From contig NC_069005.1 in NCBI RefSeq assembly GCF_001194135.2, positions 15,076,964-15,140,963 on the forward strand: a stretch of DNA of 64,000 nucleotides, written 5' to 3'. The stretch is from Octopus bimaculoides (lineage: Eukaryota). Both the position numbers and the translations under genes were made by a program. Positions 4,308 to 43,073 of this stretch are shown one piece after another. Position 1 is the stretch's first letter. The number at the start of each line of letters is the position of its first letter. The notes below the pieces were generated by a model. It made no database searches. It had not been told where the DNA came from and saw only the letters and a program-made list of their open reading frames with translations.

Positions 4308-4361
4308 CGATTCCGGGCTGTTACTGGGGCTCGGAGAACGCTGAATGGTCACCAAAGCCAT
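4308..4361 (-). CDS. SSH: Protein phosphatase Slingshot (SSH1/SSH2 family), first coding exon (18 codons); rest of the gene lies left of the window
   Basis: The reverse complement reads ATG GCT TTG GTG ACC ATT CAG CGT TCT CCG AGC CCC AGT AAC AGC CCG GAA TCG | GTAAGT = MALVTIQRSPSPSNSPES, then a perfect phase-0 donor (GT at 4307-4306). MALVT(V/L)QRSP is the diagnostic N-terminus of Drosophila Ssh and human SSH1/SSH2 (recalled). A possible 5'UTR acceptor (tttgttatag|c) lies at 4456. Confidence 0.88.
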
Positions 4362-6659
4362 CACAGATGGCCAGAGATGATCTCCAAGACACTTTCGGTT
4401 CTAAGATAGACCGATAACTCAATTACAGTAGAGTAATTATTACCAATAGATGTTGCTATAACAAATATATATGTATATATATGTATGTATATAAAATATA
4501 GAAATATGTGTTTGTGTGGTGTATATAATAATAATATAAATTCCAATGATATTTCTTTCCTGCCGACTACGTCCTCGCCCTTTTCTTTTTTTCTTATATC
4601 TGAAATCGTTTAGAATTTTCCGAAGTATTTTTTTATCCACTGTACTCCTTTCTCACCTTCCACGGTTTGTCGAAGGTTTCTTAGGTCCAAGGAAACATTT
4701 CATCTGTCTGTTGTAGAAAAGTAGACAATCTGATGCCCGTTGGCAGCATTCTCTGACAGTATATATATTTTTTGATGAAGTTATAGATTCACGTTGGTCT
4801 TTTTATTCTGTGTTATCTTCTTTTAGATATGTATGTATCTCGATAACCGGCTTAGAGGGAAAACAAAGAGAGAGAAAGAGAAAAATGGAAGATATGATTT
4901 TTTTAAAAGCAGAATTCTAACCTATCCTGCTATTCAGGGCCTCACAGAACCATAACAAACACTGCGACCGCCACCTTAACCAGCGCAGTAGCGGTAACAT
5001 AAAAAGCAACAACACCGTGTGAAGGTTAGTTGACGACTGGCTTTAACTGCAGTTTTGTACGATTCTGCAGGAGGCCCGGAAGAAAAAGTAATAGCAGGAG
5101 TAGACCGTATAATTGAAGTGGGAGGGACGTTGGTAACCTGCAGAACAGTTAATAAACACGCCTTAACTTGGACAGTCTTCAGGTTTAATCAGGTGATAGA
5201 TAAATATTATTAAATGTGTGGGTTTTTTAAATTCAAAATATAATATATGTATGTATATATGTTCTGAAATGAATGAAATATTTTGTAATATATTTGTGAA
5301 GATAGGCGATTGCTTAGCTTAATGATTTAAGTACTGTTCAGGAGAAGACCTTTAAAATATGTAAAGGGAGAACATGGTTGGAGTAGTAAGTGTAAAACTT
5401 GCTTAAGCCTCTGAACAGAACTGCATCATAAGATGTGTTTATATATATTAGAGATTTTCTTCGCATTATATAATAATAATAATAATAATATTTAACTACA
5501 TCACTGCTTGGTACCGGTGACTTTACTGAAAAATCTAATCAACTTTTTTGTTATTAGTAAATACCGTTCTTTTTTTATTAGATTACAAGAAAATGTTAAA
5601 ACATTAGTTGTCCAAACTATCTATGTTTTTTTGTTAAACTCAACGATTGCTTTAAACTTGTTCATGCTTCCGTATTGTAATAAATTACCTAAGACTTCTG
5701 CATTTAAGTCAATATTTATTCATGGACATGCGCTAAAACCCGGAAGTCATTTGGTTTCGTCCTTTTATGTCCTGAGTTCGAATCCCACTGCAGTCATCTT
5801 TCCCTGCCTTCCATTTTTCCGTAAATATAGTCACAATTTTGACTAGAAAAAAATAACTGGAAAAAATGTGACGTTTCATTTAAATACTATAAATTGTACT
5901 TGATATTATAAAACAAATAATATCTTAAGTTTAATGGCCTTACACTTGTGAAAGAAAATCGTTTTATGTATTAGCTTTAATAATAACGAAGCAAAGGATA
6001 ATGCTAATTATCATTTATTGAAATTTTTCCGTGAATTTTTTTCCGGGTGCGATAAAATATAATTACCGGCTGGGAAACCAGAGTTGAATCATCCACTATT
6101 AAACTCCTAAGAAAATTAATTTTGTACTTGAAAGAAGCCTCTGTATACGTATGTGTAAGATCCTCTCTCTTCTGAGCAAACAATTATACAAAAGTCATGG
6201 GAACACAGAAGTCAGCTTGTAAATCATGGGGCCATTAACAGCTTTAATAATTTTTTTTTTAATTTTCGTCAGCTGCACGCACTCTTAAAACAAAACATTG
6301 ATTCCTGTGCTCTGCGTCCTGGCTCCCCTAAGAAAGAATCTGTGGACAAACTGCTATCTCTCTCTAAATGTATCGCTTCCTGATTAGTCTGTGAAAACAC
6401 CGCGTTGTATGATCGAACCTGGGACATCACTATGACGAAGTGAACTTCTTAACTATACAGGCATTATATGGCCAGATTTATTGAATACACATATGTATCC
6501 GCAATTCATACATCTCTGTTTCAGTACTTCAGTGAATGGGCGGATATGTGAGTAAAATCCACACCTGTTACTCGTTGCTTTTCTTTTTTTTCTTTTTCGG
6601 AAGTAAACTATGAAGTGCTTGCTCTCTCTCAGTAGGACTAACACGTGTAAGCACTTCCA

Positions 6660-6982
6660 ACGTAGTTGCAGTTACCGGCGGAAACTAGTCGAATTGTTCT
6701 CAGGTTCGTTCTGCCGAGAGACTTCTGAGAATTAACCAGTTTCTGTTTACACAGCGAAACTGAATGCGTGTTTATGAAACACGACTGTAATTTGTCCACA
6801 CACTGCCGCCTATGATTATATCTGCCATAATTTACCCTTCCTTAAAATAGCTAAATTTATACGATATTGAAGTATTCGTTAGGTAACCAATCATGCATGG
6901 GTACCTTTTTTCGAGAAGCAGGTCACATGAGATATGGATCATCATGGGGTGAGCCGCACTACTAGAAGTATTCAAGGTAATT
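6660..6982 (+). promoter_or_regulatory. Candidate promoter and non-coding first exon between SSH and EFCAB5
   Basis: Unique, relatively CpG-rich DNA. It has an RFX X-box-like GTTACC-GGC-GGAAAC (6671-6685), CCAAT at ~6887 and a plus-strand donor CAAG|GTAATT at 6977. Motif matches only. Confidence 0.25.
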
Positions 6983-7134
6983 TTTCATTAGGCGTGCCAT
7001 TCAGAAAGTCCCGCGGGTCACCAGTGATGACTGCGGTATATTGTCACTTTACCTGTCAGAAATAGAATCCAAACTTTCTTGAAATCACATCCTATCATCT
7101 TAAAATTTTTTTTTAAGTGGTATGTAGGAGTGGG

Positions 7135-41545: not shown

Positions 41546-42067
41546 TGGAACTAGGTGACCCTGATTAGTATTGTCATTACAATTCTCATCTTCCAAAATC
41601 ATGTGAGTTTCACCATTGATCATTGCTTAATTGTTTCCTTCATCCAAATTGTATATTTGCCATACTGCTTCCCAATGATTCTGGTGGTGATACTGAGTCT
41701 AATCCTTCACTTCAGACTTTGCCAGGAATAAAACCTCCACTGCTATAACTCTTTCGTTGCAGGGATATGCAATTGCTACTAACACAATGAAGATTTGTTT
41801 TCTTTACATAAACCAAAAAGATATAAAAGGGGATGAGACTTGAAATGAAATGAAAAAAGATGCAACAAACTGAAACTTTAATGCATTTGGGTTTAAATTT
41901 CAATTTTATGGTTGAATTTCATTTTCAGTTTTTATTTCTTCATTCCATGAAAAAAAACATGAAAAAACAAAATAAATATCTCAGTTTATTTTAAGTTTTT
42001 AAGATTTTAAACATTAAAAATAAAATTGTAAAAGCCAGGAAAAAGTTGAATTTAAACCTCTGTTATT

Positions 42068-42260
42068 TTTACTCTTTAGCATTTAAACTGGCCTCATCTG
42101 GCCCAAATAGTCTTCCTGTTTTATGTTCAAACTGGTCAGATCTGGTCTCTCACACTTACTCTACAATGTCATTATAAAAGTAACCAATAGCATCATTGAA
42201 GTTTTGCAACCATGAGATAATGCATGATTAATTCAAAACAAAGTGAAAACATAAGCATTA
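42068..42260 (+). repeat. Interspersed repeat family E (ctttagcatttaaac...agatctggcctctcacacc); second copy ~61978-62160
   Basis: Two recognisably homologous ~190-bp copies. Confidence 0.55.
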
Positions 42261-42609
42261 CGTTTAACTGAGTAATCTGGATAATAGCAGTGCCCCAGTA
42301 TGGTCACAGCTCACTGACTGAAACAAGTAAAAGGGTATACCAGCTAATATAACAATTATTTTTGGGGCTAAATATTTCTTACTGGTAATCATTCCTCCTT
42401 CACCACTCTAAAATTAGAGGAGTACATATTTAGGGTTTAGTGAGTAGGGAAATGTATACTGCCAAAAGAGCAGGAGACAGTAGTTGTGGTAAATTTGGAA
42501 CTCCTCATGTAACAGCCACTGCTTTTATGACTAATTTTTGTTTGTCTCTTTTTCATTTTAGATTTGAATTTTCTAATGAAATAAAAGAGTTACAGAGGTT
42601 ATTTTCATC

Positions 42610-43073
42610 ATGACTGACTCATTTGCTGAGCGAAGAAACAGCACTTTCACCTTAGAAGAGGACAGCCTTCCTTTGCAGAAACTCATCAAGCAGAATAAAG
42701 CTGAAAATGTAGAAGACACCACTATAAAAGACTACATATCTAAAATGGCTTCTGAGATCCCAGACCATATCTTTCACTATGACTGGTTTCAAGAGGAGAA
42801 AGATCTCTCGGTGCAATTTATTGCAATTGCTGAAAAATTATTGCCCACTTTGATTTTGGGTGTTGAGAAGCTCTTGAGGGAAGTTGAAAAAAAGGGACTG
42901 ACTGAAGACAAGAATCTATGCCCAAATTTCAACCCCTTGAACTTCCTTGCTCAATTCATGCTGCGGAATCATCCTCGGAACCTTAGCGTGTCAGAACAAT
43001 CAGCTTATATCAAGATGTTGCAGCATGTTACCAAAAAAGTAAACAAGCAGTTTAGTAGTGAGAAAAAGAAAAG
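42610..43073 (+). CDS. EFCAB5: EF-hand calcium-binding domain protein 5 orthologue, first coding exon (exon starts at 42562)
   Basis: Acceptor ...tttttcattttag at 42561, ATG at 42610 with A at -3, and an in-frame upstream TGA at 42565-42567. Translation includes DWFQEEKDLSVQFIAIAEKLLPTLILGVEKLLREVEKKGLTEDKNLCPNFNPLNFLAQFMLRNHPRN, resembling the recalled human EFCAB5 segment (KLLPTLVPGVENML...FDPINYLGEYLIRNNP). Phase-2 donor AG|gttaat at 43074. Confidence 0.85.

Follow-up and report, generated by a model that had tools for sequence, protein, structure and literature searches.

Why should the gene for Slingshot (SSH), a cofilin phosphatase and regulator of actin, stand head to head with the unrelated gene EFCAB5 in an octopus, with 38 kb between the two start codons? 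The question is raised by a stretch of 64,000 nucleotides of Octopus bimaculoides (NCBI RefSeq assembly GCF_001194135.2, contig NC_069005.1, positions 15,076,964 to 15,140,963 of the forward strand), which is referred to here, at its full length, as the window. We consider it likely that the window holds the 5' ends of Slingshot and EFCAB5, transcribed away from each other, and that the two form an inherited, conserved pair whose spacer was stretched by transposons in the octopus. The pairing itself is inherited and is not an accident of the octopus genome.

The coding features of the window, and the spacer between them, are listed below in window positions. From other assemblies, 10 kb of flanking sequence on both sides of either EFCAB5 exon 1 or the Slingshot exon was also fetched (loci numbered L001 onwards), and these loci were scanned with both profiles.

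4302..4307, minus strand: splice donor GTAAGT of Slingshot exon 1; the gene continues past the left end of the window.
4308..4361, minus strand: putative first coding exon of Slingshot, 18 codons MALVTIQRSPSPSNSPES, phase 0 at its end, with the ATG at 4361.
4362..42609, no strand: spacer between the start codons, 38,248 bp, with transposon remnants, interspersed repeats and six assembly gaps.
42610..43073, plus strand: EFCAB5 coding exon 1, 154 codons plus 2 nt; homologues were found.
42922-42975, plus strand: DPY30-like docking motif PNFNPLNFLAQFMLRNHP, inside EFCAB5 exon 1.
47294..47450, plus strand: EFCAB5 coding exon 2; its acceptor cag/T completes the codon split by exon 1, its donor is gtaagt, and homologous exons occur in L001, L002 and L004.
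57356..57481, plus strand: EFCAB5 coding exon 3, collinear with the bovine and Mercenaria proteins.
63045..63197, plus strand: EFCAB5 coding exon 4, matched by BLASTP to downstream exons of L001-L004 (E 1e-6 to 1e-7); later exons lie past the right end of the window.

The four plus-strand exons have canonical AG/GT splice sites and compatible phases, and the translation of their 900-nt join is an exact match to residues 1-300 of UniRef A0A0L8IAA9 (P0010, Octopus bimaculoides). A profile search returned 236 relatives of this protein, including ones named by NCBI as EFCAB5-like (Mercenaria mercenaria) and EFCAB5 (Trichoplax sp. H2) as well as proteins of Capitella teleta and the coral Desmophyllum pertusum; the stretch NFNPLNFLAQ is invariant in the family alignment. 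Comparison of the exon join with solved structures yielded a single chain, 9fqr_Xl (1509 residues), collinear over residues 140-397 (E=6.8e-18). A profile with the EFCAB5 exon 1 family reached E=7e-30 against the same chain, and the invertebrate relative P0011 matched its residues 128-570 at E=4e-52. The entry 9FQR is a model of the bovine sperm doublet in which EFCAB5 lies in the stalk of radial spoke 3, where its DPY30 motif pairs with adenylate kinase 7 and docks on CFAP91 (PMC11779644). Because of its length, its motif and this paper, we infer that 9fqr_Xl is EFCAB5 under a wrong label. By homology, the plus-strand gene is EFCAB5.

On the minus strand, the exon at 4308..4361 is the putative start of a Slingshot phosphatase gene. 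A profile of the 18-residue Slingshot motif scored 45.8 bits at this exon and 5.4 bits at the runner-up in a six-frame translation, making the site unique in the window. The octopus exon reads MALVTIQRSPSPS and the SSH1 and Slingshot proteins in the databases begin MALVTLQRSPTPS; the conserved N-terminus MALVT(L/V/I)QRSP(S/T)PS is matched. Short proteins beginning with MALVTLQRSPTPS are SSH1 isoform 3 of chimpanzee, a Slingshot-like protein of Labeo and Slingshot-like 1 of turbot. The homologue search with the motif, whose query was padded with X, returned short fragments, all of vertebrate SSH1 type except P0122, and full-length octopus Slingshot, vertebrate SSH2 and vertebrate EFCAB5 were not among the homologue-search matches. 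At L008, the MALVT exon is followed 9 kb downstream, on its own strand, by an exon that codes SFSESYFTVKGAALILPQ and carries the SSH N-domain motif SESYFTVKGAAL, the sole such site in all of the sequence fetched. This downstream exon is 67% identical to the N-domain stretch of human SSH1, in a reference sequence that agrees with a database SSH1 fragment over its first 36 residues. No second Slingshot exon was recognised at 1..4307 of the window, a database search with a 33-residue octopus open reading frame (ORF) of the window returned a single match to an irrelevant repeat protein, and Pfam and PDB searches with Slingshot N-terminal peptides gave no match. Taken together, the motif score, the exact match of the exon join, the EFCAB5 names among the relatives and the collinear 9fqr_Xl alignment bear out the original prediction, made from the letters of the window, that a Slingshot exon on the minus strand and EFCAB5 exons on the plus strand lie here in divergent orientation. 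It had also held that no other host coding sequence is recognisable between the start codons, and this agrees with Pfam searches of 20 ORFs of at least 90 amino acids (not an exhaustive six-frame scan), in which only transposon-type domains and no host gene were recognised in the spacer.

The same two exons were found head to head in five other invertebrate species, at the following loci and distances between start codons.

L019, Capitella teleta, scaffold KB309562.1: head to head, 1188 bp.
L008 and L009, one species, EFCAB5 exon 1 65% identical to Mercenaria: head to head, 1937 and 2091 bp.
L002, bivalve-like, 77% identical to Mercenaria: head to head, 2868 bp.
L001, an invertebrate: head to head, 3424 bp.
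L014, closest to Capitella (64%): head to head, 4580 bp.

All of these loci are N-free. In Capitella, an annotated minus-strand gene starts exactly at the MALVTVQRTPTPS start codon, and in 5/5 relatives the first Slingshot exon has 18-21 codons, ends in phase 0 and is followed by GT(A/G)AG or GTAATG. These data confirm deep conservation of the pair in molluscs and an annelid, and its conservation across bilaterians is plausible. The original prediction had gone further and claimed survival of the pair in a mollusc and a vertebrate. The part of this claim that reaches outside the cephalopods stood, with Capitella and four other invertebrate species carrying the pair over 1.2-4.6 kb; the vertebrate half is weaker and draws on a cat gene order and on the presumed human arrangement. 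The cat interval runs TMIGD1, BLMH, SLC6A4, NSRP1, EFCAB5, SSH2 (PMC7644637), and a human association study handled SSH2 and EFCAB5 as one locus. If the mammalian neighbourhood is included, the pair would date to or before the protostome-deuterostome ancestor.

Several points weigh against this reading of the locus. Joining of the octopus exon to the body of Slingshot by splicing is predicted, with the body exons outside the window. The chain 9fqr_Xl bears the molecule name A-kinase anchoring protein 14 (AKAP14), a protein only about 200 residues long. The taxa of L001, L002, L008 and L014 were placed by protein similarity alone, and the orientation of the two human genes at 17q11.2 is presumed. 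In mammals SSH2 is broadly expressed and EFCAB5 is sperm-specific, so that co-regulation of the two is not obvious. Furthermore, adjacency in intermediate taxa held in part: it is present in Capitella, L001, L002, L008/L009 and L014, and the first Slingshot exon was not found in the 10 kb that precede EFCAB5 in Mercenaria (L005), L016, L003/L004, L015, L017, Desmophyllum (L006) and Trichoplax (L007), by a scan that a Slingshot exon more than 10 kb away, as in the octopus, would escape.

Other sequence occupies the upstream side of EFCAB5 in several of these taxa. In Mercenaria (L005) and the related bivalve L016 it is reverse-transcriptase sequence. The coral Desmophyllum and Trichoplax have another small gene, about 165 residues in length, head to head with EFCAB5.

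L006 5090-9528 and L007 5566-8730, minus strand: alternative neighbour gene of the coral and Trichoplax, homologous between the two by three collinear exon matches, e.g. QSPIQGVLRPAMWLPGIKNFHS vs QAPIQSFLRPAIWVPGLRNVHT.

Pfam returned no family for this gene. Because the coral and Trichoplax have this other neighbour in common, the data suggest that Slingshot came to be paired with EFCAB5 after cnidarians and bilaterians had split, or that the pairing was replaced in the coral and Trichoplax lines. A third type of neighbour was observed in two compact genomes, where the gene next upstream of EFCAB5, with the same orientation, encodes a HECT-type ligase (L015 1-9600 and L017 1-9450).

The octopus spacer bears on both the reliability of the assembly and the question of a promoter. 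With a mean GC of 0.38 the window is AT-rich; it contains eight N-gaps, none of which touches a coding exon. The octopus and Mercenaria proteins are collinear across all exon junctions, and thus the two intronic gaps conceal no conserved exon. The six gaps of the spacer measure 10-873 N and have repeats at their flanks. Gaps at 11022, 47956 and 62889 lie within or beside simple repeats, and the gap at 37956-38263, flanked by 188-bp direct repeats (91% identical) with further copies at 32687-33108, is probably a collapsed or unresolved tandem repeat. Continuity across the six spacer gaps is not demonstrable from the window sequence alone.

The ratio of observed to expected CpG was profiled in 2-kb bins over the window, where its mean is 0.47, and three domains were distinguished.

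4001..8000, no strand: CpG-retaining zone, observed/expected 0.90-0.95, around and upstream of Slingshot exon 1; candidate Slingshot promoter.
32001..38000, no strand: CpG-retaining zone, observed/expected 0.93-1.14 (values from partial sequence, as the zone includes three assembly gaps), just upstream of the CpG-depleted domain; candidate EFCAB5 promoter.
40001..64000, plus strand: CpG-depleted domain, observed/expected 0.13-0.35, coinciding with the EFCAB5 transcription unit.

Between the two zones, the ratio was 0.24-0.64 at 12-26 kb. The bin at 28-30 kb is likewise near CpG expectation. The profile would fit a pair of unmethylated promoter zones, separate from each other, with germline methylation over the EFCAB5 body. 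As judged from base composition, the octopus pattern, in which CpG-depleted transposon sequence divides the two CpG zones, speaks against a single core promoter for both genes; such a promoter would be compatible with the spacers of 1-5 kb in the relatives. Bidirectional promoters are defined by transcription start sites (TSS) within about 1 kb of each other on opposite strands, and the octopus start codons, at 38,248 bp, are much farther apart. The Capitella start codons, 1188 bp apart, are compatible with a bidirectional promoter, as judged by start codons and not by TSS. A scan of the spacers for the X-box (RFX) motif revealed no common site.

The reading of an inherited pair has to be weighed against the possibility that the octopus adjacency is a scaffolding artefact across one of the six N-gaps, a danger that the original prediction had itself raised. 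The gaps between the two genes have repeats at their flanks, and continuity is uncheckable inside the window; however, the same exons stand head to head in five independent gap-free assemblies of other species, and a random mis-join would not recreate both partner and orientation. Because partner and orientation are repeated in this way, misassembly or chance is very unlikely, and we regard such an artefact as barely conceivable. It is also highly improbable that the plus-strand gene encodes some other protein with a DPY30 motif and is not an EFCAB5 orthologue, in which case the comparison with 17q11.2 would be false. In its favour, Pfam returned no family, no Dpy-30 and no EF-hand on the 574-residue octopus model, and among the 4 relatives scanned the Dpy-30 family was above the cut-off on P0011 only and sub-threshold on the other three. 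The N-terminal region of the octopus protein (42610-43073) is the most diverged copy among P0001-P0120, with 30-47% identity to its relatives, as compared with about 50-60% among the mollusc, annelid, coral and placozoan copies themselves; the AKAP14 label of 9fqr_Xl points the same way. Yet the homology with the bovine chain is collinear for about 260-440 residues, far past the 18-residue motif, and true DPY30 chains match the motif alone, at E about 0.01. Two database relatives are named EFCAB5, and EF-hand ORFs lie downstream in L003/L004 and L015. A faint EFCAB5_C match at L017 was not reproduced by Pfam on the downstream ORFs of related loci.

With Slingshot and EFCAB5 taken as an inherited pair, there remains the matter of what has held them together, for which the original prediction had proposed a shared promoter or a regulatory constraint. 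In a compact ancestral state, both promoters would have lain in a common interval of 1-5 kb; a break in that interval may have been harmful to one or both genes, and the pair may thereby have been kept as a conserved ancestral microsyntenic pair. In the octopus, later transposon insertions would have lengthened the interval to 38 kb, and the promoter zones of Slingshot and EFCAB5 now appear to be separate. We would place damage by breaks and passive retention about level with each other. Under passive retention, which by itself we put somewhat short of an even chance, the spacer was simply too short to take many breakpoints and no regulatory element is shared. Spacers of 1.2-4.6 kb in compact genomes suit this explanation, as do a Slingshot exon already more than 10 kb off or gone in three lineages (bivalve or other), the 38 kb of inserted sequence tolerated in the octopus, the failure to find an X-box-type ciliary motif common to the spacers and the differing expression of SSH2 and EFCAB5 in mammals. 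Its difficulty is that persistence in mollusc, annelid and mammal for more than 500 million years goes well beyond that of unconstrained neighbours (Irimia et al., PMC3514665), and that the pair persists despite the heavily rearranged genomes of coleoids. An unlikely extension of the constrained view is that a shared regulatory module arose in the bilaterian stem, replaced a neighbour of the coral and Trichoplax type, couples the actin-remodelling phosphatase and the radial-spoke protein in spermatogenesis or ciliogenesis, and would act across 38 kb in the octopus.

The pair fits a known class, the conserved ancestral microsyntenic pairs (CAMPs), as a real but ordinary example. About 600 CAMPs have been described, with the 5'-5' orientation enriched, and co-regulation or interleaved regulatory blocks have been proposed as their causes (Irimia et al. 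2012, PMC3514665). As in CAMPs, unrelated neighbours have here been kept across phyla in the 5'-5' orientation, which is over-represented and best conserved among CAMPs, with a short spacer in compact genomes; unlike in typical CAMPs, the octopus spacer is far longer. CAMPs are defined as non-paralogous neighbours present in at least 4 major metazoan lineages, and the lineages named here are three, Mollusca, Annelida and Vertebrata (the last by literature), with four more positive species and a negative cnidarian and placozoan. Pairs with a bidirectional promoter, such as HSPE1-HSPD1, resemble the present one in being long conserved and in divergent transcription from a short common interval; they differ from it, by start codons and not TSS, in that the octopus start codons are 38 kb apart, and also in that there are two CpG-retaining zones and that mammalian expression differs. 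The likeness to the human SSH2-EFCAB5 neighbourhood at 17q11.2 is that the same two families are adjacent, SSH2 being presumably transcribed from the minus strand and EFCAB5 from the plus strand, with abutting 5' ends; the difference is that, of the three vertebrate Slingshot paralogues, only one is known to keep the EFCAB5 partner. In cephalopods, retained metazoan microsyntenies have large intergenic regions (Schmidbaur et al. 2022, PMC9023564). The octopus pair is similar to these blocks as an old linkage that has survived coleoid reorganisation with a large intergenic space; however, the blocks comprise at least 3 genes and the pair comprises two only, so it may have gone unscored, and neither gene name occurs in the supplementary files of that study (PMC9023564). 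In the literature, no text naming the Slingshot-EFCAB5 pair was found beyond the cat gene list, in a search that lay outside the published supplementary pair lists (Irimia et al. 2012), and a search on EFCAB5 with bidirectional returned no paper on the locus.

Altogether, the locus provides one more well-documented case among the several hundred gene pairs that have been adjacent since early animal evolution, in this instance within a genome noted for its broken linkages. The short Slingshot exon 1 and EFCAB5 exon 1 can serve as mutual annotation anchors in fragmented invertebrate assemblies, and the comparison of 1-5 kb spacers with the 38-kb octopus spacer offers a natural test of the need for a compact shared promoter.

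The remaining features of the window are repeats and transposon remnants; Rfam and tRNA scans of the window gave no match.

13961..16543, plus strand: broken remnant of a long terminal repeat retrotransposon, with Pfam matches to Asp_protease_2 and RVP (weak), RVT_1 (weak) and the zinc-binding Integrase_H2C2 (E=3e-13).
44430..44849, minus strand: remnant of a DDE_3 (Tc1/mariner-type) transposase in EFCAB5 intron 1 (Pfam E=2.7e-5, under the curated cut-off).
498-889, 1081-1205, 36481-36822, 39455-39537, 49658-49818, 51405-51500 and 55324-55461, both strands: copies of a short interspersed repeat, in the Slingshot intron, the spacer and the EFCAB5 introns.

The short interspersed repeat family has copies of about 140-350 bp that are 77-90% identical and occur on both strands. 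Two further repeat copies of ~500 bp (38896-39420 and 39976-40484) are inverted with respect to each other and 77-84% identical; together they make up a large palindrome-like structure, 2-4 kb before the EFCAB5 start codon.

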